32,000 nucleotides of DNA, taken from contig MTSL01000114.1 of NCBI GenBank assembly GCA_002794465.1, forward strand, positions 6,829-38,828. The letters run 5' to 3'. The notes below the pieces were generated by a model. That model searched no databases. It saw only the letters and a list, made by a program, of their open reading frames with translations, and had not been told where the DNA came from. This DNA is from Paramicrosporidium saccamoebae KSL3 (taxonomy: Eukaryota; Fungi; Cryptomycota). Both the position numbers and the translations under genes were made by a program. Shown piece after piece: positions 4,672 through 31,929 of the stretch; the stretch's first letter is position 1, and each line of letters starts with the position of its first letter.

Positions 4672-6893
4672 TTATTTTTTGGCCAGCTCATCGTATGCAT
4701 GCTTTGTAGCAAACGGCCTAGGACCCAAGAGTTCAATGACGTCTTCACGATTCAGTACCTCCTTCTCTAGTAATCTCAATGCCAACTTTTCCACTTCGGC
4801 TCTTTTTTCCGAAAGCAAGGCGACAGTTCGTTCATAGGATTCGGCCACCATTTTCCGAGCTTCTTCGTCAATCATCTTGGCAGTCTCCTCAGAGTAAGGA
4901 CGCTGGGTTAGGGAAGAATTTTCAGACTGCTCGTCAAACGACAGGGTCCCAATGCGCGGATTCATGCCAAAAATGGCGATTTGAGAATAGGCCAACTTTG
5001 TGACTTTCTGGAGATCATCACGAGCGCCGGTAGTTACACTTGCATGCCCAAAAAACATTTCCTCAGCAACTCGACCCGCCAGAGTCATTGCCATTCGGTC
5101 TGCTAGTTGGGACCGGCTGTATAGGTATTGATCCTTTGGAAGATATTGGGCATAACCCAAGGCTCCAATGCCACGAGGAATGATAGAGACCTTGAGGAGA
5201 GGATCAGCATGTTCTAGAAACCAGCCAGCAACTGCATGTCCAGCTTCGTGATAGGAAACTAGCCTTTTTTCTTCAGGAGATAATACGCGACTCTTTTTTT
5301 CTAACCCAGCGATGACTCGCTCAATGGCCATGTCAAAGTGTTTGTCATCAACAAGATCCGAGTTGAAGCGTGCTGCAATGAGGGCTGCTTCGTTGCAGAC
5401 GTTGGCAATGTCGGCACCTGCAAACCCTGGTGTCAAGAATGCCAGTCTTTGAGAGAGAGCAGCTTTGTCTGAGCGAGTCTTTATCGGCCCGAGATGGACA
5501 GCAAAAATATCTTGGCGGCCCTTCAGGTCGGGCTTGTCAATGGCAATCATTCGATCGAATCTGCCGGGTCTTGTCAAGGCTGGATCAAGGACGTCCGGAC
5601 GGTTTGTACCCGCCAGGACTATAATTTGATCAGTGGACGCAAATCCGTCCATCTCAACTAAAAGTTGATTCAGGGTATTCTCACGCTCATCGTTGCCACC
5701 CCCGCCCAAATATCCACCACGTCCCCGAGCCTTTCCGATCGCATCAATTTCATCAATGAAAACGATGCAGGGAGCCATTTCGCGGGCCTCGTTGAACAAG
5801 TCTCTGACGCGCGACGATCCTACACCCACAAACATTTCAACGAATTCGCTTCCAGAGACGCTAAGAAAAGGAACATCAGCTTCGCCTGCTGTAGCCTTTG
5901 CCAACAGCGTCTTTCCTGTTCCAGGTGGCCCGCTCAGAATCGCCCCCTTTGGTATTTTTGCGCCCAACCGTTGGTACTTGGCGGGCTCTTTTAGAAACTG
6001 GACAAACTCCATAATCTCCTCCTTTGCCTCGTCCATACCGGCGACATCCTTGAAGCGGACCTTTACCAAAGTTTCTGAATTGTACAATTTAGCTTTTGAC
6101 TTGCCAACATTGAAGATGCTGGCAGCGCCACCAGATCCAGCCCGCTGGCTGGCTCTCCAAAGAGAGTAAAAGATGTACGCTGTCAATATGGTTGGGGCAT
6201 ACTGGAGAAGGGTGGTGAATGGCCCCGGACTGCTCTGCTCATATGAAATTGGGACTCTTTGGGACTTTGGAGTTCCCAAGTCATCTTGGGCCTGCTCCAA
6301 CGCCTTCTCAAAGGAATCAACTGAGCCGATAGTAAAGTAAACCGGGAGTGAAGAAGCAGAGCCGGATTTGAGTACAATTCGGACAATATTTTTGTCAAAA
6401 ACGACTAGACGATCTACGGTTCCTCGTTCCAAGTAATCACTGATAAATTGAGGAAATGTGATCTCGTGGGTCGGCGTAATCATCGATTGGTAAAGATACC
6501 AAGTAGCTGCTGCGCCTACCAGCATCGCAGGCCAGGAGACGTTACTGAAATCTGGCATAGGGTTCTTTTTATCACCTCCCCGACCTTTGCTGCCCTTGTC
6601 CTCTTCCTCGGGCTCCTCCTTTCTTCCCTCGGGCTCGCGTGTCCCGCCTCCCGAGCCTCGAACAACTCGAAATGAAATTGGCCCGAGTCTCGCAATTTCC
6701 TCATCTTTCAGCTTTCGTGGGTGCCCTCCGCTGTAGTGTCGTCTCGACATCAGACAGTTACTATAGTGCGCCACTCTAAAAAGTAAATCAAAATTACATG
6801 TATCAGTGCATACGGAATAGTATGGTGCACACCTTTTCGATTTCCCAGTGAATTCCACAGGCCCGCCAATGTAAGGCGCTTGGAAGGGTGCAT
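4672..6893 (-). CDS. AFG3: Mitochondrial m-AAA protease subunit (AFG3/YTA12/AFG3L2 family, FtsH-like), 727 aa
   Basis: Walker A GPPGTGKT, Walker [12 protein letters not shown], zinc motif HEAGH, two N-terminal TM segments. A 38-nt intron (6776-6813, GTATGC..TTTTTAG) links ATG 6893, giving the presequence [42 protein letters not shown]. Confidence 0.93.
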
Positions 6894-7397: not shown

Positions 7398-7472
7398 ACT
7401 TTTGAACTTTTGAACTTTTGAGCTTCTGGACTTTTGAACTTCTGACTTTTGAACTTCTTGAACCTTTTGATT
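7398..7472 (+). repeat. Degenerate tandem 7-9-mer (C)TTTTGAA, about 9-10 units
   Basis: acttttgaacttttgaacttttgagcttctggacttttgaacttctgacttttgaacttcttgaaccttttgat. Confidence 0.8.
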
Positions 7473-7522
7473 TCTTGGCTTCTTCATTGGCGGTGCCCTA
7501 TATATCAACCCTCACAGTCATA

Positions 7523-9142
7523 ATGATTTTTAACATTGCAGCCGTCCTAAAGTCCATCCAAATCTTTACTTGGGATGTAAATTATTTGGCCGAGTTGGCA
7601 TCAAGAAAGTCACGTTTTTCTTCAAGGCCCAATCTATATCGCCAATTACCCCACTCCAAGTTGATCCCTCCATTAGTGGCTAGGAAGCAGCGATACCTAC
7701 ACCGACTGGGCATGCCGTTGAGGTTATTACTGAGGTTGGCACATCTTGGAGTCATATTCGGTCCAGCGTTTCTCCTGGTCGCACCCATTTGTGCCCTCTC
7801 ACCAGGTCGGAAAAGGCCGTTACTGCATGGAATTATGTATTGGTGCTTGCAGAGGGCAGGCGCTACCTTTATAAAGCTCGGTCAATGGGCCTCAACTCGT
7901 CCGGATATACTCTCTCCCGAACTGTGTCGAGTTCTCTGTGAGCTGAACTCACGGGCACCGGCCCACAGTATGACTTGGAATAGACACGTATTCAGATCGG
8001 AATTTGGAGTGGAACTGGAGCAGATCTTCCGGGACTTTGACTGCAACCCTTCGGGTTCCGGGACAGTTGCTCAAGTACACAGAGCTTGGCTGCGCAAGAG
8101 CGGATTAGAGGTTGCCGTGAAAATATGCCATCCAAACATTGAAGAACATATTGAGAGAGATTTACGACTAATGAAGATTATGGCCGAGGTCGCCCATTCG
8201 ATTCCGCTGTTCAGGAACTTTAATCTCCCCGAGGAGGTCGGGTATTTTTCACAAATGATGCGACAGCAACTCAACTTGAGGCATGAGGCCTATGCTCTGG
8301 ATCACTTTTCTCGCAACTTTTCATATTGGAAAAATGTCCATGTGCCAGTTCCTGTCTACCAGTTTGTCTCGACTCACATTCTTACAGAAACGTTTGCCAC
8401 GGGAACGGCAATTTCGGCATTTTCTTGCGACTCTCTGGAAGAAAGTTTGACGGATCCGGAGAAAGAAGTCTGGACTCTGGCCAAGACGCAAATTGCAACC
8501 ATTGGATTGCAGTCCTTCCTGCAAATGCTGCTCTGGGACAACTTTGTGCATGCCGATCTCCATCCTGGAAACATATTTGTTAGATTTGTCAATAAGCGTG
8601 GAAAAGTGTATTGGAGCGATCGTCCTTCAAAAGAGCTAGTTCATTTGATTGCCCAAGAAGATCTCATCCCTCAACTTGTCTACCTCGACACGGGCCTAGT
8701 GACCCAATTGTCGAGGAAAGATTTTCAAAACTTTAATGATCTCTTTAAAGCTCTTGTACTGCACGGCGACGGCTACCGCGCAGGACAGTTGATTATTGAA
8801 CGGTGTCCTCCACAGCACAGGTCGCGCATAGTTGATCCAGACGGATTTTGCCGATCCATGGACACAATCGTCCAACCAATCTTTCGCAATGTTTCGCTAA
8901 AGTTGAAGAGTTTTGCTATTGCACCAATTATCTTCCAGGTGTTTGATCTTGTCAGGGACCATCGAGTGCATTTGGACGGGTCTTTTACCAATCTGGTGAT
9001 GAGTTTTGGCTGTGTAGAAGGCTTGGGCAGACAGCTCTCTCCTGACCTTAACTTGCTTCCATTTTTAGCAAGCGCCGCACTCCAATATTTGGTAACCAAC
9101 GTTGCCTTTAAGCTTGATCAAATACGTGACAACGCTGCGTAA
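7523..9142 (+). CDS. ABC1/UbiB (ADCK2/Cqd1-like) atypical mitochondrial kinase
   Basis: GATFIKLGQWASTRPD (KxGQ), SGSGTVAQVHRA, VAVKICHP, HADLHPGNI, DTG. First ATG is 7523; the ORF-track start lies in the tandem repeat. Confidence 0.9.
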   Translation: MIFNIAAVLKSIQIFTWDVNYLAELASRKSRFSSRPNLYRQLPHSKLIPPLVARKQRYLHRLGMPLRLLLRLAHLGVIFGPAFLLVAPICALSPGRKRPLLHGIMYWCLQRAGATFIKLGQWASTRPDILSPELCRVLCELNSRAPAHSMTWNRHVFRSEFGVELEQIFRDFDCNPSGSGTVAQVHRAWLRKSGLEVAVKICHPNIEEHIERDLRLMKIMAEVAHSIPLFRNFNLPEEVGYFSQMMRQQLNLRHEAYALDHFSRNFSYWKNVHVPVPVYQFVSTHILTETFATGTAISAFSCDSLEESLTDPEKEVWTLAKTQIATIGLQSFLQMLLWDNFVHADLHPGNIFVRFVNKRGKVYWSDRPSKELVHLIAQEDLIPQLVYLDTGLVTQLSRKDFQNFNDLFKALVLHGDGYRAGQLIIERCPPQHRSRIVDPDGFCRSMDTIVQPIFRNVSLKLKSFAIAPIIFQVFDLVRDHRVHLDGSFTNLVMSFGCVEGLGRQLSPDLNLLPFLASAALQYLVTNVAFKLDQIRDNAA

Positions 9143-17935: not shown

Positions 17936-19270
17936 TTAATTCTTGTTGGGAGGAGTGGGGGCAGTGTAGGGGATGAATTCAACGCCGCCCATGTATGGAC
18001 GTAAAACTGTGGGAACAGTAAAGCCTTCGGGGGTCTGGTAATTCTCCAAGATGCAACAGAGTGTGCGCTCTGTGGCAGTCAGAGTGCTGTTCAGACAGTG
18101 CACATAGCGCTTCTCGCGATCTCCCATCTTACGAAGGCCACAGCGGATCTCAAGTCGGCGCGACTGATAATCTGTGCAATTAGAACAGCTGACAAGCTCC
18201 TTGTATTCGCCGTAGACGGGGAACCATGCCTCCAAATCGTACTTTTTAGCAGCTGCGTTGTTCAGTGCACCGGAAACAATGCCGACAATGCGATACTGCA
18301 GACCCAGGGACTGATAGAATTCTTCCGAGTAGCCGATCATCTGGTCAAACATTTCCCAAGACTTTTCCGGCTCACAGATGGCAAATTGTTCCACCTTTTC
18401 AAACTGATGGATACGATAGATGCCCCAAGTGTCCTTTCCATGAGAGCCAGCCTCCTTACGGAAGCACGTGCTATAGCCAGCGTACAAGATTGGCAGCTGT
18501 TTTTCGGGCTGCTCAAACCATTCTTCAGCGTGCATAGAGGCAATGGGCTGTTCAGAGGTGGCAATCAGGTATCGGTCCTCCTCCCCAGGAACTTTGTAGA
18601 GCTGCTCGTCAAAGTCTTCCAATTGAGCACATCGTCCCATCATCTCCTTGAGCATCATGAAGGGCGTCTGCAGGAGAGTATAGCTGCGCTTTGCCAAGAA
18701 ATCCATCCCGTAATTGATGAGTGCCTGATTGAGACGCACACCGACATTTTTCAAAAAATAGCCACGATGTCCCACCACCTTGGAGCCTCGTTCCGGGTCG
18801 TAGCCCTCAAGACGAGCAAGCACTTGGTGGTGGAAAAGACCTCCCTCCAGTTTCTTTGGCTCCTGGCCGTCCTTCCAGTGATACCGAACCAGGTCGTTGT
18901 CCTTTTCGTCACGGCTGTCAACGACGCTACCATGGACGATATTGCCAACAGTAGTCAACTTGACGTTTCTCAATTTTTCCTTCTCAGCCATGGCAGTGGT
19001 GGCATCCTCCTTTTGTTTGACTACGGCGCTTCTTTTTTCAATCAGCTCGGATGCATCTTCTTTGCTCTTCATCTTTTCGGCAATGAGGGTTTGGAACTGA
19101 CGGGCCTCCTTGTTGAGCTCGTCGACGACGAAACGCAGCTTTACCCATTCCTTGTCGAGTTCAATAATTTCGTCAACGAGTTCGACAGAGGCGCCGCGCT
19201 TGCGCTGCGAATCCTTGATCAGCTCAGGCTTTCCGCCCTTATCCACTCGGAACAGATTAATGTCCAACAT
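17936..19270 (-). CDS. SES1: Cytosolic seryl-tRNA synthetase
   Basis: MLDINLFR N-terminal coiled-coil arm, YLIATSEQPI, FRKEAGSHGKD..GIYRIHQFEKVEQF, ELVSCSNCTDYQSRRL, HCLNSTLTATERTLCCILEN. Confidence 0.97.
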   Translation of the reverse strand: MLDINLFRVDKGGKPELIKDSQRKRGASVELVDEIIELDKEWVKLRFVVDELNKEARQFQTLIAEKMKSKEDASELIEKRSAVVKQKEDATTAMAEKEKLRNVKLTTVGNIVHGSVVDSRDEKDNDLVRYHWKDGQEPKKLEGGLFHHQVLARLEGYDPERGSKVVGHRGYFLKNVGVRLNQALINYGMDFLAKRSYTLLQTPFMMLKEMMGRCAQLEDFDEQLYKVPGEEDRYLIATSEQPIASMHAEEWFEQPEKQLPILYAGYSTCFRKEAGSHGKDTWGIYRIHQFEKVEQFAICEPEKSWEMFDQMIGYSEEFYQSLGLQYRIVGIVSGALNNAAAKKYDLEAWFPVYGEYKELVSCSNCTDYQSRRLEIRCGLRKMGDREKRYVHCLNSTLTATERTLCCILENYQTPEGFTVPTVLRPYMGGVEFIPYTAPTPPNKN

Positions 19271-25489: not shown

Positions 25490-26098
25490 TTATATTAGTG
25501 CCACCTTGTTTAGATGTAGCAGCTCTTCAGCGAGACGAAAACGTAATACATAAATGTCGTTTTTCTGGAGATCCGCAGTCATATCCCGGTGGACTCGCAC
25601 GGTGCCCACTTCTTCGAGTACTCTACAAATAACGTGCGCGTCCGTCTTGGGTTGTGCAACCAGTTCGTCTGTGGGTAGTTCTGCCAACCCGGCAGGCAGA
25701 TGCTTCAATACGGAGCCCTCGAATGCCTTTGCTTTACACTTTGCATACCGACCCAGATAGACTCGTTCTTCTGGCGACAACAAAGTCTCATCTTTCAGCC
25801 AATATATCCAATACGCTTCAATTTTTGCCAATCTGCAGCGCAAATAGGAGGCAATGACATAACGTAGCCGTTCTACTTCCATCTGGTACAGCGTATTGAG
25901 ATGGGCGTCGAGTTGTTCACTGAGGAGCGCCTGCTGGTTGGCAATCAATTCGAGGAGGTTACTAATGAGCTCTGTGGCATAGGGCAGCAATGTGGGAGAG
26001 AGTCGCTCGTTGAGCCACACCTGGAATAATGCAGATACTTCCTCCTCTGGCTGCGTCTCATTGTACATGGAGAATGCCAGGCCATCGCTCTCCAACAT
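25490..26098 (-). CDS. SLD5: GINS complex subunit Sld5 (GINS4)
   Basis: WLNERLSPTLLPY, LYQMEVERLRYVIASYLRCRLAKIE, LLSPEE, P..DAHVICRV, IYVLRF. Confidence 0.92.
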   Translation of the reverse strand: MLESDGLAFSMYNETQPEEEVSALFQVWLNERLSPTLLPYATELISNLLELIANQQALLSEQLDAHLNTLYQMEVERLRYVIASYLRCRLAKIEAYWIYWLKDETLLSPEERVYLGRYAKCKAKAFEGSVLKHLPAGLAELPTDELVAQPKTDAHVICRVLEEVGTVRVHRDMTADLQKNDIYVLRFRLAEELLHLNKVALI

Positions 26099-26375
26099 TG
26101 AGAAATATTTTCTTTTAATAGATCTGTCGAAGAACTAAGGTTATTTATTTGAAGACGGCGGCGTTTTTTAGAGGTCGCTACCCTTTATGATTGTGGGACT
26201 ACCAATAATGAACGGATATTTTTTAACAAGATTTACATTCAGTGTAATCAGTATAAAAACATGTTATGAAATTAATGTGGAATTGTCGTCTGAATTGGAA
26301 CTATCAAATCGTCGCCCAACGGCATCTACACGTACCCTGGCTTCGCTGTTGTTTCGCCGGACTGCTCGTCGTCTA

Positions 26376-29303
26376 ATGTCATTTTCGGATAAAAGCCGCG
26401 TTGAATCCCTCACCCCGTTTCCCAGCAGCGTTCCTTTTACGGATGCACGTCGACTGGAGTACTGGACTGCCCAGAAGACGCGTCAAACGTTCTTGGACTA
26501 TTTTGTGGAGGCCTGTGGCCACAGCTTTGTTCCGAGCAGTGCAACCATCCCACACGACGATCCAACGCTCCTTTTCGCCAATTCGGGAATGGCGCAGTTC
26601 AAGACCATTTTCCAGGGAGTTATTGACCCAGCTGCACCTTTTGCCAAGCTGAAGAGGGCGGCAAATTCGCAAAAATGCATTCGTGCAGGAGGAAAGCATA
26701 ATGACCTGGAGGATGTTGGCAAGGACGTGTATCACCACACTTTCTTTGAAATGTTGGGAAATTGGTCTTTTGGAGACTATTTTAAGAAGGAAGCAATTTC
26801 CATGGCCTGGGAACTCTTGACCACAGTGTATGGACTCCCCAAAGAGCGTCTCTATGTGACCTACTTTGGAGGAGACGAGCGATGCAACCTTCCTGCCGAT
26901 TTGGAGGCAAAACAGCTTTGGATGGAGGCTGGTGTTGCCGAAGAACGTGTTCTTCCCTTTGGAATGAAGGAGAATTTCTGGGAAATGGGAGAGTCTGGAC
27001 CCTGTGGACCATGCTCAGAAATCCATTTTGATCGGATTGGTGGACGCGATGCCTCGGCTATGGTGAATATGGATGATCCTGATGTCCTTGAGATATGGAA
27101 CTTGGTTTTCATGCAATTTAACCGTGAACTTGATGGATCCCTCCGCTCTCTTCCCAACAAACATGTAGACACGGGAATGGGTTTTGAACGCGTCCTCTCT
27201 GTCCTCCAAAATAAGCGCTCAAATTATGACACTGACGTCTTTATGCCCATCTTTGCTGAGATTGAGCAGCGTTCCGGTTGTCGTCCATACAGTGGAAAGG
27301 TAGGAAGAAGCGAAGATGTGGACGGCATTGACATGGCATATCGTGTCATTGCTGATCACATCCGCACTTTGACATTCTCCATCTCTGATGGCGGTTGTCC
27401 TTCCAACGATGGTCGTGGCTACGTCCTCCGTCGAATTCTACGTCGTGCTGTCCGCTATTCCCACGACAAGTTGAAGGCTTCCCCAGGCTTCTTTGCCAGC
27501 CTCGTTGACATTGTTGTTGAGCGTTTTGGCGATGCATTCCCCGAGATTAAAAAGTCACCAGAGTTGGTCAAGGAGCTTTTGTTAGAGGAAGAGACTCAAT
27601 TCCGCAAGACCTTGGAACGCGGTTTGGTTCAATTTGGCAAATTCTCAAAGACTGCCAAGGACGGCGTTCTTTCTGGCTCTGATGTCTGGAGACTTTATGA
27701 CACTTATGGCTTCCCTGTGGATTTGACACGTCTGATGGCAGAAGAGGCAAACTTGAGAATTGACGAAGACGGCTTCCTGGTGGCCCAAAGCACTGCCAAG
27801 GAGCTGAGTCGCGCTGGAAAACACTCTGACTCTGACAACCCCCTTAACAAGGTGACCATTGATGTCCATTTGGCCAGTGATTTGGAGAAGAAACACACGA
27901 CACCCATCACTGATGATTCCTTCAAATATACCGACTCTATTGTTGAGGCCAAAATTGTCGGTTTAATTTCCGAGGGTGAAGTAGTCTCTTCCCTTCCGTC
28001 AACATCTGACGTGAAATATTTTGGAGTGTTGCTGGATCGTACCAACTTTTATGCCGAATCGGGAGGACAAGTTTATGATGAGGGAGTGATCACTGGAGCT
28101 GACGGACAAATGGAATTTGCCGTCGAGGCCGTCCAATCATATGGTGGATATGTTCTGCATGTGGGTTACCTTAAATATGGTGGGATCTCTGTTGGAGAGA
28201 ATGTCATTGCCACCTTTGATGAAACGAGACGGCGTCCCCTTCGTCATAATCACACTGCAACCCATTTGCTCAATTACGCAATCGGAAACGTAATGACTGA
28301 ACAGAATCCAGACCAGAAGGGCTCCCTTGTGGCTCCTGATCGTCTCCGCTTTGATTTCAACTCTACCAAGGCTCCTTCCAGTGAACAAGTTGAACAGATT
28401 GAGTCGATTGTAAACGGATTCATTGAAAAGAACTTTGAAGTATCCACTATGCCACTTCCCCTGGAGCAGGCAATGGCACTTCCCGGTCTTAGAGCAGTCT
28501 TTGGTGAGACTTATCCCGATCCAGTGCGCGTAGTCTGCGTGGGTGCTCCACTTTCTCAAGTCCTCGCCAACCCCACCGATGATCGCTGGAAAGACGTGTC
28601 AGTAGAGCTATGCGGCGGTACACATGTCAAGAGGAGCAGCGACATTAAAAAGTTTTTGATTCTCACCGAATCGGCCATCGCCAAGGGAATCCGTCGCATT
28701 GTCGCTGTGACTGGAGAAGAGGCTGTCAAGGCCCAACAGCTGTCACGTGAACTCGATGGTCGTCTGGAGGCCATTAGCAGGAAGAGCATTATGGACGAGG
28801 AAGCTATAAAGTCACTTTCCAAAGACGTCGATGAGGCTGCCATTTCCCTTTTGGAGAAGAATAGACTCCGTGATGGAGTTGCAGCTGTGCGACAAAAGAT
28901 GGTGGATGCAGACAAGGCAGTCCGTCTGACACAATCTCGTCTTGCTCTCGACACTGTTGCGCCCTTCCTGGAATCCACTGCCCATCCCGTTGTGGTGAAG
29001 CGTATTGACGTTGGTGACAACGGAAAGGCTCTTCTGGACGCCCTGAATGCTCTTAAGAAAGCGGGACATTCTGGTCTCTTGTATTCTGTGGACCAGCAGT
29101 CTGGAAAGATTCATTACTACAGCGTCGTGGCCGAGCAACACAAGTCGCTGGATGCGTCGGAATGGGCAAAGGTCTTTGGAGAGCCGCTCGAGGGACGATC
29201 AGGCGGCAGAGCACTTGCTGCCCAAGGAAGTGCTCCCATGCGGGATTGTGCTGATGCTGAAAGGTTGGCCTTGGAATTTGCATCCATCAAGGTCAGAGAC
29301 TAA
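26376..29303 (+). CDS. ALA1: Alanyl-tRNA synthetase (cytosolic AUG form; probable non-AUG mitochondrial extension from ~26319)
   Basis: DDPTLLFANSGMAQFK, HHTFFEMLGNWSFGDYFK, DTGMGFERV, editing motifs HTATHLL and ELCGGTH, C-Ala domain GGR..AAQG. Confidence 0.96.
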   Translation: MSFSDKSRVESLTPFPSSVPFTDARRLEYWTAQKTRQTFLDYFVEACGHSFVPSSATIPHDDPTLLFANSGMAQFKTIFQGVIDPAAPFAKLKRAANSQKCIRAGGKHNDLEDVGKDVYHHTFFEMLGNWSFGDYFKKEAISMAWELLTTVYGLPKERLYVTYFGGDERCNLPADLEAKQLWMEAGVAEERVLPFGMKENFWEMGESGPCGPCSEIHFDRIGGRDASAMVNMDDPDVLEIWNLVFMQFNRELDGSLRSLPNKHVDTGMGFERVLSVLQNKRSNYDTDVFMPIFAEIEQRSGCRPYSGKVGRSEDVDGIDMAYRVIADHIRTLTFSISDGGCPSNDGRGYVLRRILRRAVRYSHDKLKASPGFFASLVDIVVERFGDAFPEIKKSPELVKELLLEEETQFRKTLERGLVQFGKFSKTAKDGVLSGSDVWRLYDTYGFPVDLTRLMAEEANLRIDEDGFLVAQSTAKELSRAGKHSDSDNPLNKVTIDVHLASDLEKKHTTPITDDSFKYTDSIVEAKIVGLISEGEVVSSLPSTSDVKYFGVLLDRTNFYAESGGQVYDEGVITGADGQMEFAVEAVQSYGGYVLHVGYLKYGGISVGENVIATFDETRRRPLRHNHTATHLLNYAIGNVMTEQNPDQKGSLVAPDRLRFDFNSTKAPSSEQVEQIESIVNGFIEKNFEVSTMPLPLEQAMALPGLRAVFGETYPDPVRVVCVGAPLSQVLANPTDDRWKDVSVELCGGTHVKRSSDIKKFLILTESAIAKGIRRIVAVTGEEAVKAQQLSRELDGRLEAISRKSIMDEEAIKSLSKDVDEAAISLLEKNRLRDGVAAVRQKMVDADKAVRLTQSRLALDTVAPFLESTAHPVVVKRIDVGDNGKALLDALNALKKAGHSGLLYSVDQQSGKIHYYSVVAEQHKSLDASEWAKVFGEPLEGRSGGRALAAQGSAPMRDCADAERLALEFASIKVRD

Positions 29304-31269: not shown

Positions 31270-31929
31270 CTAGAGAAACTTGACGATCGACAGATAGAAC
31301 AGATAAAAGCATGGCATCAGGGCAGAGAGGAAACAAAAGACACGTCCACGGTGCATATCCAGGGCGTAGCTGATGACATACATTTTGCGGGCGGTGAGGA
31401 AATAGGTGACCATCTCCAAGACTTTGTCGTCGGCGATCCCGGCATTCCAAGAGACCATCACTGAGGCGAGCAGAAGGATAAAGGCCTCAATGTTGTTGCT
31501 CTGAGAATGATAGAGACGGGTAGAGACGCCGCCCAGGGCAGACCGTTGTTCACGGGGACGACTCAATTCCATGCAACGACCGGCTGCCAAGATGGCCATA
31601 AAGGGCATTATTACGGTCATCAAGAGGAAGGTGACTAGTGCATACCATGCAATTGCCAAATACGTCAAAGCACGGGCCTTTAGCGCTCCCAATCCCAGGG
31701 GTGTGAGATAGAGTTTTGTGGCCATGGGACAAACAAACTTGGTAATCAGACCGAAGCGGAGAGTGGCCAAGAAAACAGCCACCACTCCGAGGGCGAGGAT
31801 GGTGTGCAAAGCGAGCGTCTCTGAGACATGTTTAGTCGTCGGACTCACTTTGGAGCGGCCGCCCTTTGATTCGGTCGTTGATTTGCGGGGAGTGGCACGG
31901 CGGGCAGGTGATCGGGAACGGCCGGCCAT
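31270..31929 (-). CDS. MAPEG-family membrane protein (microsomal GST-like) with a basic N-terminal extension
   Basis: TM helices and motif RLYHSQSNNIEAFILL...FLTARKMYVISYAL (the family H/RxxxNxxE...RxxH/Y pattern). Confidence 0.7.
   Translation of the reverse strand: MAGRSRSPARRATPRKSTTESKGGRSKVSPTTKHVSETLALHTILALGVVAVFLATLRFGLITKFVCPMATKLYLTPLGLGALKARALTYLAIAWYALVTFLLMTVIMPFMAILAAGRCMELSRPREQRSALGGVSTRLYHSQSNNIEAFILLLASVMVSWNAGIADDKVLEMVTYFLTARKMYVISYALDMHRGRVFCFLSALMPCFYLFYLSIVKFL

Follow-up and report, generated by a model that had tools for sequence, protein, structure and literature searches.

In Saccharomyces cerevisiae the mitochondrial isoform of alanyl-tRNA synthetase (AlaRS), a product of ALA1, is initiated at the tandem codons ACG(−25)/ACG(−24) (Tang et al. 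2004, as reported in PMC3245939), and AlaRS starts at upstream near-cognate codons are documented in this yeast, in S. pombe and in C. albicans (PMC3245939, PMC7049704). Putative non-ATG AlaRS starts have been mapped in A. gossypii, C. glabrata and K. lactis, the ALA2 gene of V. polyspora has starts at ACG(−23) and TTG(−28), and the context feature that matters most for non-AUG starts is A at −3 (PMC3245939). Fungal AlaRS genes have repeatedly exchanged AUG and near-cognate starts for one another (PMC7049704). CUG-initiated N-terminal extensions in Kozak context are known from animals and plants (PMC5666671), and mitochondrial isoforms made from alternative starts have been described (PMC12718117). 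Here we analyze the AlaRS gene carried on a 32,000-nucleotide stretch of DNA from Paramicrosporidium saccamoebae KSL3 (contig MTSL01000114.1), referred to throughout as the window.

The window gene is a complete AlaRS with catalytic, editing/SAD and C-terminal domains: over the open reading frame (ORF) 26376-29303 Pfam returns tRNA-synt_2c (E=1.7e-209), tRNA_SAD (1.2e-13) and DHHA1 (7.4e-07). On criteria that can be tested from sequence it belongs with the near-cognate-initiated, dual-localized AlaRSs of fungi. As in S. cerevisiae ALA1, a near-cognate codon, in frame and preceded by A at −3, lies upstream of a single AlaRS ORF; the predicted extension is acid-free and rich in Arg, Ser and Thr; no AUG intervenes between the start codons; and the first AUG would give the cytosolic form. 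Unlike ALA1, the window gene has a single CUG rather than tandem ACGs and a predicted extension of 13 residues rather than 25; the context, too, is the metazoan-style ACC...G and not the AAR preferred by yeast. With other fungal AlaRSs it shares the logic of leaky scanning and the swapping of AUG and near-cognate starts among relatives (CUG in the core clade defined below; AUG in the proteins P0012, P0014 and P0016), but here neither the start nor its context varies among eight genomes, a kind of conservation undescribed in the fungal AlaRS work cited. The animal and plant cases likewise place a CUG between a purine at −3 and a G at +4 and use the upstream start to add a targeting peptide, although they concern other genes. 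The mechanism itself is not new, near-cognate AlaRS starts being already known from yeasts.

We consider it likely that one AlaRS mRNA gives rise to two proteins by leaky scanning, the form begun at CUG 26337 being mitochondrial and the form begun at AUG 26376 cytosolic. Scanning ribosomes would first reach CUG 26337 in its ACC-CUG-G setting, where a minority would initiate with initiator methionyl-tRNA (Met-tRNAi), adding 13 residues, M-ASLLFRRTARRL, with the properties of a positively charged, acid-free, amphipathic presequence; the long isoform would then be imported and charge mitochondrial tRNA-Ala. Most ribosomes would bypass the CUG, encounter no other AUG and begin at AUG 26376, producing the cytosolic enzyme. 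The likely products are proteins of 975 amino acids (from AUG 26376) and 988 amino acids (from CUG 26337). The model supposes that the CUG is used as a start and that the extension directs import; it further supposes a transcript start between about 26278 and 26336, and that this gene is the sole AlaRS of the genome. In animals mitochondrial AlaRS is supplied by a separate gene, AARS2. The features of the locus to which we refer are as follows.

26187..26210, forward strand: in-frame ATGs at 26187 and 26208, probably unused; 26187 is the start of the public gene call P0001 (1038 amino acids)
26252..26258, forward strand: TATAAAA, 85 nucleotides (nt) before the CUG; a candidate core promoter element whose relevance is unproven
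26278..26375, forward strand: zone free of ATG in all frames, which would permit leaky scanning from CUG to AUG
26319..26321, forward strand: ACG, the earlier candidate start; in frame, in the context cgcccaACGg (−3 position C); unlikely to be the main initiator
26334..26340, forward strand: heptamer ACC-CTG-G, with CTG at 26337, A at −3, CC at −2/−1 and G at +4 (optimal Kozak context)
26337..26375, forward strand: putative CUG-initiated extension of 13 codons; proposed mitochondrial presequence, possibly running on into MSFS...
26376..29303, forward strand: AlaRS ORF from the first AUG, 975 amino acids plus stop, with the Pfam domains given above; proposed cytosolic isoform

A preliminary description of this locus had proposed that a mitochondrial isoform is started at ACG 26319. 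The sequence features from which it argued were all found again: ACG 26319 in frame with ATG 26376, the codons from one to the other reading T-ASTRTLASLLFRRTARRL, the ATG-free zone, an AG-free zone, the TATAAAA, and out-of-frame ATGs at 26261, 26266 and 26275. The AlaRS frame is open upstream as far as an in-frame stop, TAG 26169. The out-of-frame ATGs lie downstream of the in-frame ATGs 26187 and 26208, and the upstream in-frame stretch EINVELSSELELS is acidic, as had been said of it. The dinucleotide AG is absent from 26251-26393 (the next, at 26394-26395, is within the coding region) and the relatives have no conserved AG beside the ACC; in line with the earlier view on splicing, an upstream AUG exon is unlikely. 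AUG 26376 itself stands in the context cgtctaATGt, with C at −3; in relatives the first AUG is found 1-12 residues ahead of a conserved SD..V..LTPF motif.

An invariant heptamer in the AlaRS frame

A protein search with the window AlaRS returned six metagenome-derived proteins 70-74% identical to it and one partial protein at 67%. Our core set comprises the window and seven metagenome-derived relatives (L001/2, L003, L004/5, L006, L007/8, L009 and L094), among which AlaRS identity is 67-84%; the window and the six full-length relatives are 69-84% identical to one another and so represent distinct species. The k-mer, interval and extension statistics given below cover seven of these eight genomes, L094 having been read separately. 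A scan of metagenomes with an AlaRS alignment, which relied on universal motifs and whose matches were all at most 53% identical, served as a negative control.

All eight core genomes carry the heptamer ACC-CTG-G unchanged and in the AlaRS frame. The distance from CTG to AUG ranges from 36 to 105 nt and is always a multiple of three (13 codons in the window). ACCCTGG and its sub-words are the sole k-mers of at least 5 nt common to the seven 250-nt upstream regions, which outside the heptamer are not alignable between core genomes; not one of 5000 dinucleotide-preserving shuffles shared any 6- or 7-mer. AlaRS GC content at third codon positions (GC3) spans 0.39 to 0.80, yet the Thr and Leu codons of the heptamer are invariably ACC and CTG, while the codon that follows varies (GCT, GCG or GCA, and once GGG). 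Given the codon usage of each gene, the probability of finding ACC and CTG fixed is about 10^-9.2 even if the Thr-Leu dipeptide is taken to be conserved. Because the synonymous sites of both codons are frozen, selection acts on the nucleotides rather than on the dipeptide. CTG 26337 is an in-frame codon one base off AUG with a purine at −3, and on this evidence we read the invariant ACC-CTG-G as the signature of a near-cognate CUG start in optimal Kozak context.

The word ACCCTGG does not occur in the 21,228 nt of upstream sequence from 77 distant AlaRS loci. Nor is it supported as a motif of the genome or of promoters in general, since the window contains three matches where 3.2 are expected.

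With respect to the preliminary description, non-AUG initiation stands as to its kind, which the conservation among relatives supports, as does the parallel with yeast ALA1; what changes is the codon, CUG 26337 taking the place of ACG 26319. A role for the ACG, either as the initiator of M-ASTRTLASLLFRRTARRL or as a minor, redundant start beside the CUG, could draw on its being in frame, on the G at +4, on its position upstream of an acid-free stretch, and on the precedents of yeast ALA1, which uses ACG, and of redundant non-AUG starts (PMC3245939). We nonetheless hold such a role to be improbable: C at −3 disfavors initiation at non-AUG codons (PMC3245939), a conserved in-frame ACG upstream of the CUG is lacking in every relative, the sequence 5′ of the ACC is unconserved, and it is the CTG of the heptamer that is shared instead. 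ACG 26319, a single codon with C at −3 and no counterpart in the relatives, falls outside the narrower S. cerevisiae type, which is defined by tandem ACGs, A at −3 and conservation among relatives.

The predicted extension and alternative readings

Presequence character was assessed by heuristics of composition and hydrophobic moment, on which the extension is basic, hydroxylated, acid-free and amphipathic. In the window (M)ASLLFRRTARRL, followed by MSFSDK, contains four Arg and no Asp or Glu, with a maximum hydrophobic moment of 0.69. The seven scored extensions, with Met placed at the CUG, are 13-35 residues long, and each has 4-6 Arg or Lys and none has Asp or Glu; pooled, they contain 31 basic and no acidic residues in 178, where composition predicts about 5.5 acidic ones, a composition that the other two frames do not share, and their hydrophobic moments are higher than those of these frames. 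The extension of L094 is (M)ASLFASLRRGS, 12 residues. In all eight core genomes the extensions are rich in Arg, Leu and Ser, and the opening M-A-[S/F/L]...L-x-R-R recurs. Arg is found at −2 from the Met in the window (RRL/MS) and in L001 (PRI/MS); the remaining relatives fit the pattern for the mitochondrial processing peptidase (MPP), with Arg at −2 or −3 from the cleavage site, non-uniformly.

The CUG-AUG intervals of the seven genomes, 534 nt in all, have no in-frame stop (4.1 expected) and six stops in frame +1; they contain no out-of-frame ATG and one in-frame ATG, with 4.8 ATGs expected overall. Upstream of the CUG the frame is closed by TGA after 4 codons in L007 and after 9 codons in L094, and in none of the seven relatives does an in-frame ATG read through to the CUG. 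In the window alone, nineteen open codons are not beyond chance; it is the comparative data that mark the extension as highly non-random. The AUG-less, presequence-like, in-frame extension of the preliminary description is therefore upheld, the frame being open and acid-free in eight genomes.

These data bear directly on the possibility that ACCCTGG is an untranslated element, whether a promoter, an initiator or a protein-binding site in the 5′-untranslated region, with only the AUG 26376 protein being made and the presequence-like reading arising as a by-product of a C/T-rich, A-poor leader. The region is 13% A, which by itself reduces stop, ATG and Asp/Glu codons, and in some relatives upstream ATGs lie only 20-23 nt before the CUG, so the heptamer may adjoin the transcription start. 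But a heptamer of that sort has no call to keep the AlaRS frame in eight genomes of eight, nor would it account for the contrast in stops between the AlaRS frame and frame +1, the shortfall of acidic residues, or the recurrence of M-A-[SFL]...L.RR after the CUG; the rest of the window shows no enrichment of the motif, and the AUG-initiated presequences of relatives (described below) show that the protein needs one. We regard an untranslated element as very unlikely.

A still smaller probability attaches to the suggestion that the CUG extension is translated for some purpose other than mitochondrial import, such as delivery to a different compartment or regulation of the downstream AUG. The shortness of the extension in the window and in L094 speaks for it; against it are a composition and amphipathicity typical of presequences, the lack of a hydrophobic core of signal-peptide type, and a layout that parallels that of the dual-localized AlaRSs of fungi (PMC7049704).

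The remaining alternative supposes a longer transcript on which the long isoform begins at AUG 26187 or 26208, the public 1038-amino acid call being of this kind. The two ATGs share the AlaRS frame, an open frame starting at 26172 is not expected in such AT-rich DNA (P about 0.02), and the first 17-20 residues from these ATGs are free of acidic residues. However, the ATGs are embedded in promoter-like DNA of 22-30% GC; the acidic segment and three out-of-frame ATGs follow them, and would block production of the cytosolic form from such a transcript; none of the seven relatives has a comparable read-through ATG, and two have the stops 4-9 codons before the CUG noted above; and the conserved ACC-CTG-G would be left unexplained. 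Taken together, these points leave the upstream AUGs very little chance of being the start. The public call P0001 is probably over-extended, by 63 codons relative to AUG 26376 and by 50 relative to CUG 26337.

Several observations weigh against initiation at CUG 26337 followed by import. The extension of the window, at 13 residues, is short. No stabilizing hairpin is predicted 3′ of the CUG (mean z +0.57). The window frame is open for 55 codons upstream of the CUG (26172-26336, 36% GC; P about 0.02 from composition), which leaves a small probability for an isoform begun at an upstream AUG. Finally, two relatives have an out-of-frame upstream ATG (uATG) 20-23 nt before the CUG, each opening an upstream ORF (uORF) that overlaps the main AUG.

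L004, position 2879: uATG with a uORF of 62 codons
L009, position 1041: uATG with a uORF of 36 codons

Because of these uATGs, either the leaders of the two genes would be 20 nt or less, or some extra regulation is at work, or the arrangement is unexplained. As a separate observation, both the 55 open codons upstream of the CUG in the window and the stop-free frame +2 of the CUG-AUG interval in the seven genomes are probably compositional effects.

Probable turnover of the initiator codon among more distant relatives

Upstream frames that lack an AUG and resemble presequences are present in relatives at 58-64% identity as well, and in these the heptamer is absent. In L093 the sequence AAC-ACG-TTG-C precedes the AUG at a comparable distance; L095 has att-CTG-t, and the upstream frame reads TASALLRSRVW... 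in L090 and LLFYPFSLLKFRSLFRK in L092. In P0012, P0014 and P0016 an upstream AUG is followed by a presequence and then by an internal Met; since these AUG-initiated presequences occupy the same place, the AlaRS of this group appears to be N-terminally dual-targeted. So the requirement for an N-terminal targeting extension would be common across the group, with the initiator codon turning over. The preliminary description had offered deep conservation or convergence as the relationship to yeast ALA1. Of these, deep conservation is not supported: because slightly more distant relatives use an upstream AUG or other near-cognate candidates, and because AUG and near-cognate codons are known to have replaced one another repeatedly (PMC7049704), turnover or convergence is the better reading.

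Most annotated AlaRSs of early-diverging fungi (among P0027-P0117) begin 4-20 residues before a conserved W..VR motif and have no presequence; short N-termini of this sort are seen in Rhizophagus, Gonapodya, Batrachochytrium, Basidiobolus and Rhizopus. AUG-initiated AlaRS presequences are present in Geranomyces variabilis and Synchytrium endobioticum. Unannotated non-AUG AlaRS starts may be common in early-diverging fungi.

The proposed CUG start would provide a gene-model correction for the public 1038-amino acid AlaRS call and would extend non-AUG dual targeting of AlaRS from the ascomycete yeasts to a fungal-affiliated clade. The signal of selection that the comparison gives for a near-cognate start together with its Kozak context is unusually clean, and a search for signals of this kind could reveal mitochondrial isoforms missing from the annotation of eukaryotic genomes derived from metagenomes. 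More speculatively, and with doubt prevailing, ACC-CUG-G might be a fixed 'second start codon' in this fungus-like clade, unchanged through saturating synonymous divergence (GC3 0.39-0.80). Were that true, the stringency of start selection would be tuned such that a CUG in a metazoan-type Kozak context sets the ratio of mitochondrial to cytosolic enzyme; a start of this kind might also operate in further single-copy, dual-targeted genes across the genome, and the presequence-less AlaRS annotations of early-diverging fungi might conceal similar non-AUG starts.

Upstream DNA, neighboring genes and affinity

The DNA upstream of AlaRS is bounded by a divergently oriented gene for the GINS subunit SLD5, and because this gene occupies 25490-26098 the promoter and leader of AlaRS are confined to 26099-26336. 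Other window genes referred to in this section are listed with it.

4672-6858, reverse strand: FtsH-type AAA/M41 protease
7418-9142, forward strand: ABC1/COQ8-like kinase
17936-19270, reverse strand: seryl-tRNA synthetase (SerRS), cytosolic-type; an in-frame TAG stands 5 codons ahead of the AUG
25490..26098, reverse strand: SLD5 (GINS) gene, divergent to AlaRS, with Pfam Sld5 and SLD5_C

GC content is 22-30% over 26180-26300; beyond about 26300, a point some 75 nt ahead of the AUG, it exceeds 50%. The TATAAAA noted in the preliminary description is present, and is a feature of the window only: none of the seven relatives has a TATA box within 220 nt 5′ of its CUG, and a status as conserved promoter element is not supported. 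A search of 25900-26700 against Rfam (E up to 1) matched no RNA family.

Gene order around AlaRS is conserved in part. L001-L005, and likewise the more distant L092, have an Sld5-family gene placed divergently upstream of AlaRS. Beyond the upstream neighbor of AlaRS a GST gene is found in L001, L003, L004, L007 and L091, and a MAPEG-family gene lies downstream of AlaRS in L001, L002, L007, L008 and L009; in the window the latter is at 31270-31929 on the reverse strand.

The FtsH-type protease and the ABC1/COQ8-like kinase of the window, both of kinds typical of mitochondria, together with COX6B encoded on the contig of a relative, indicate respiring mitochondria. Such mitochondria carry out organellar translation and hence require organellar Ala-tRNA. 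The window SerRS, by virtue of the TAG just upstream of its AUG, would be a single-isoform gene lacking an N-terminal extension, in agreement with the distinct cytosolic and mitochondrial SerRSs of fungi (PMC7049704). Its closest relatives are metagenome sequences at 80-85% identity.

The best named matches are all fungi for both synthetases (AlaRS 55-58%, SerRS 61-67%), with two exceptions, an AlaRS labeled 'Perkinsus sp. BL_2016' and a EukProt SerRS labeled 'Partr'; a fungal-lineage affinity is plausible. The 'Perkinsus sp. BL_2016' AlaRS, assigned to an alveolate in the NCBI taxonomy, groups with proteins whose best named relatives are fungi. L092 (P0019; considered together with P0021), which is close to it, has the divergent SLD5-AlaRS synteny of the window, and the taxonomic label may be questioned.

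The window AlaRS is intronless. That of L094 contains an intron of 38 nt at 2259-2296 (GTAAGC...TCTAG), placed after the codons for ...NSGMTQ, from which it appears that the clade has canonical, ultra-short spliceosomal introns.

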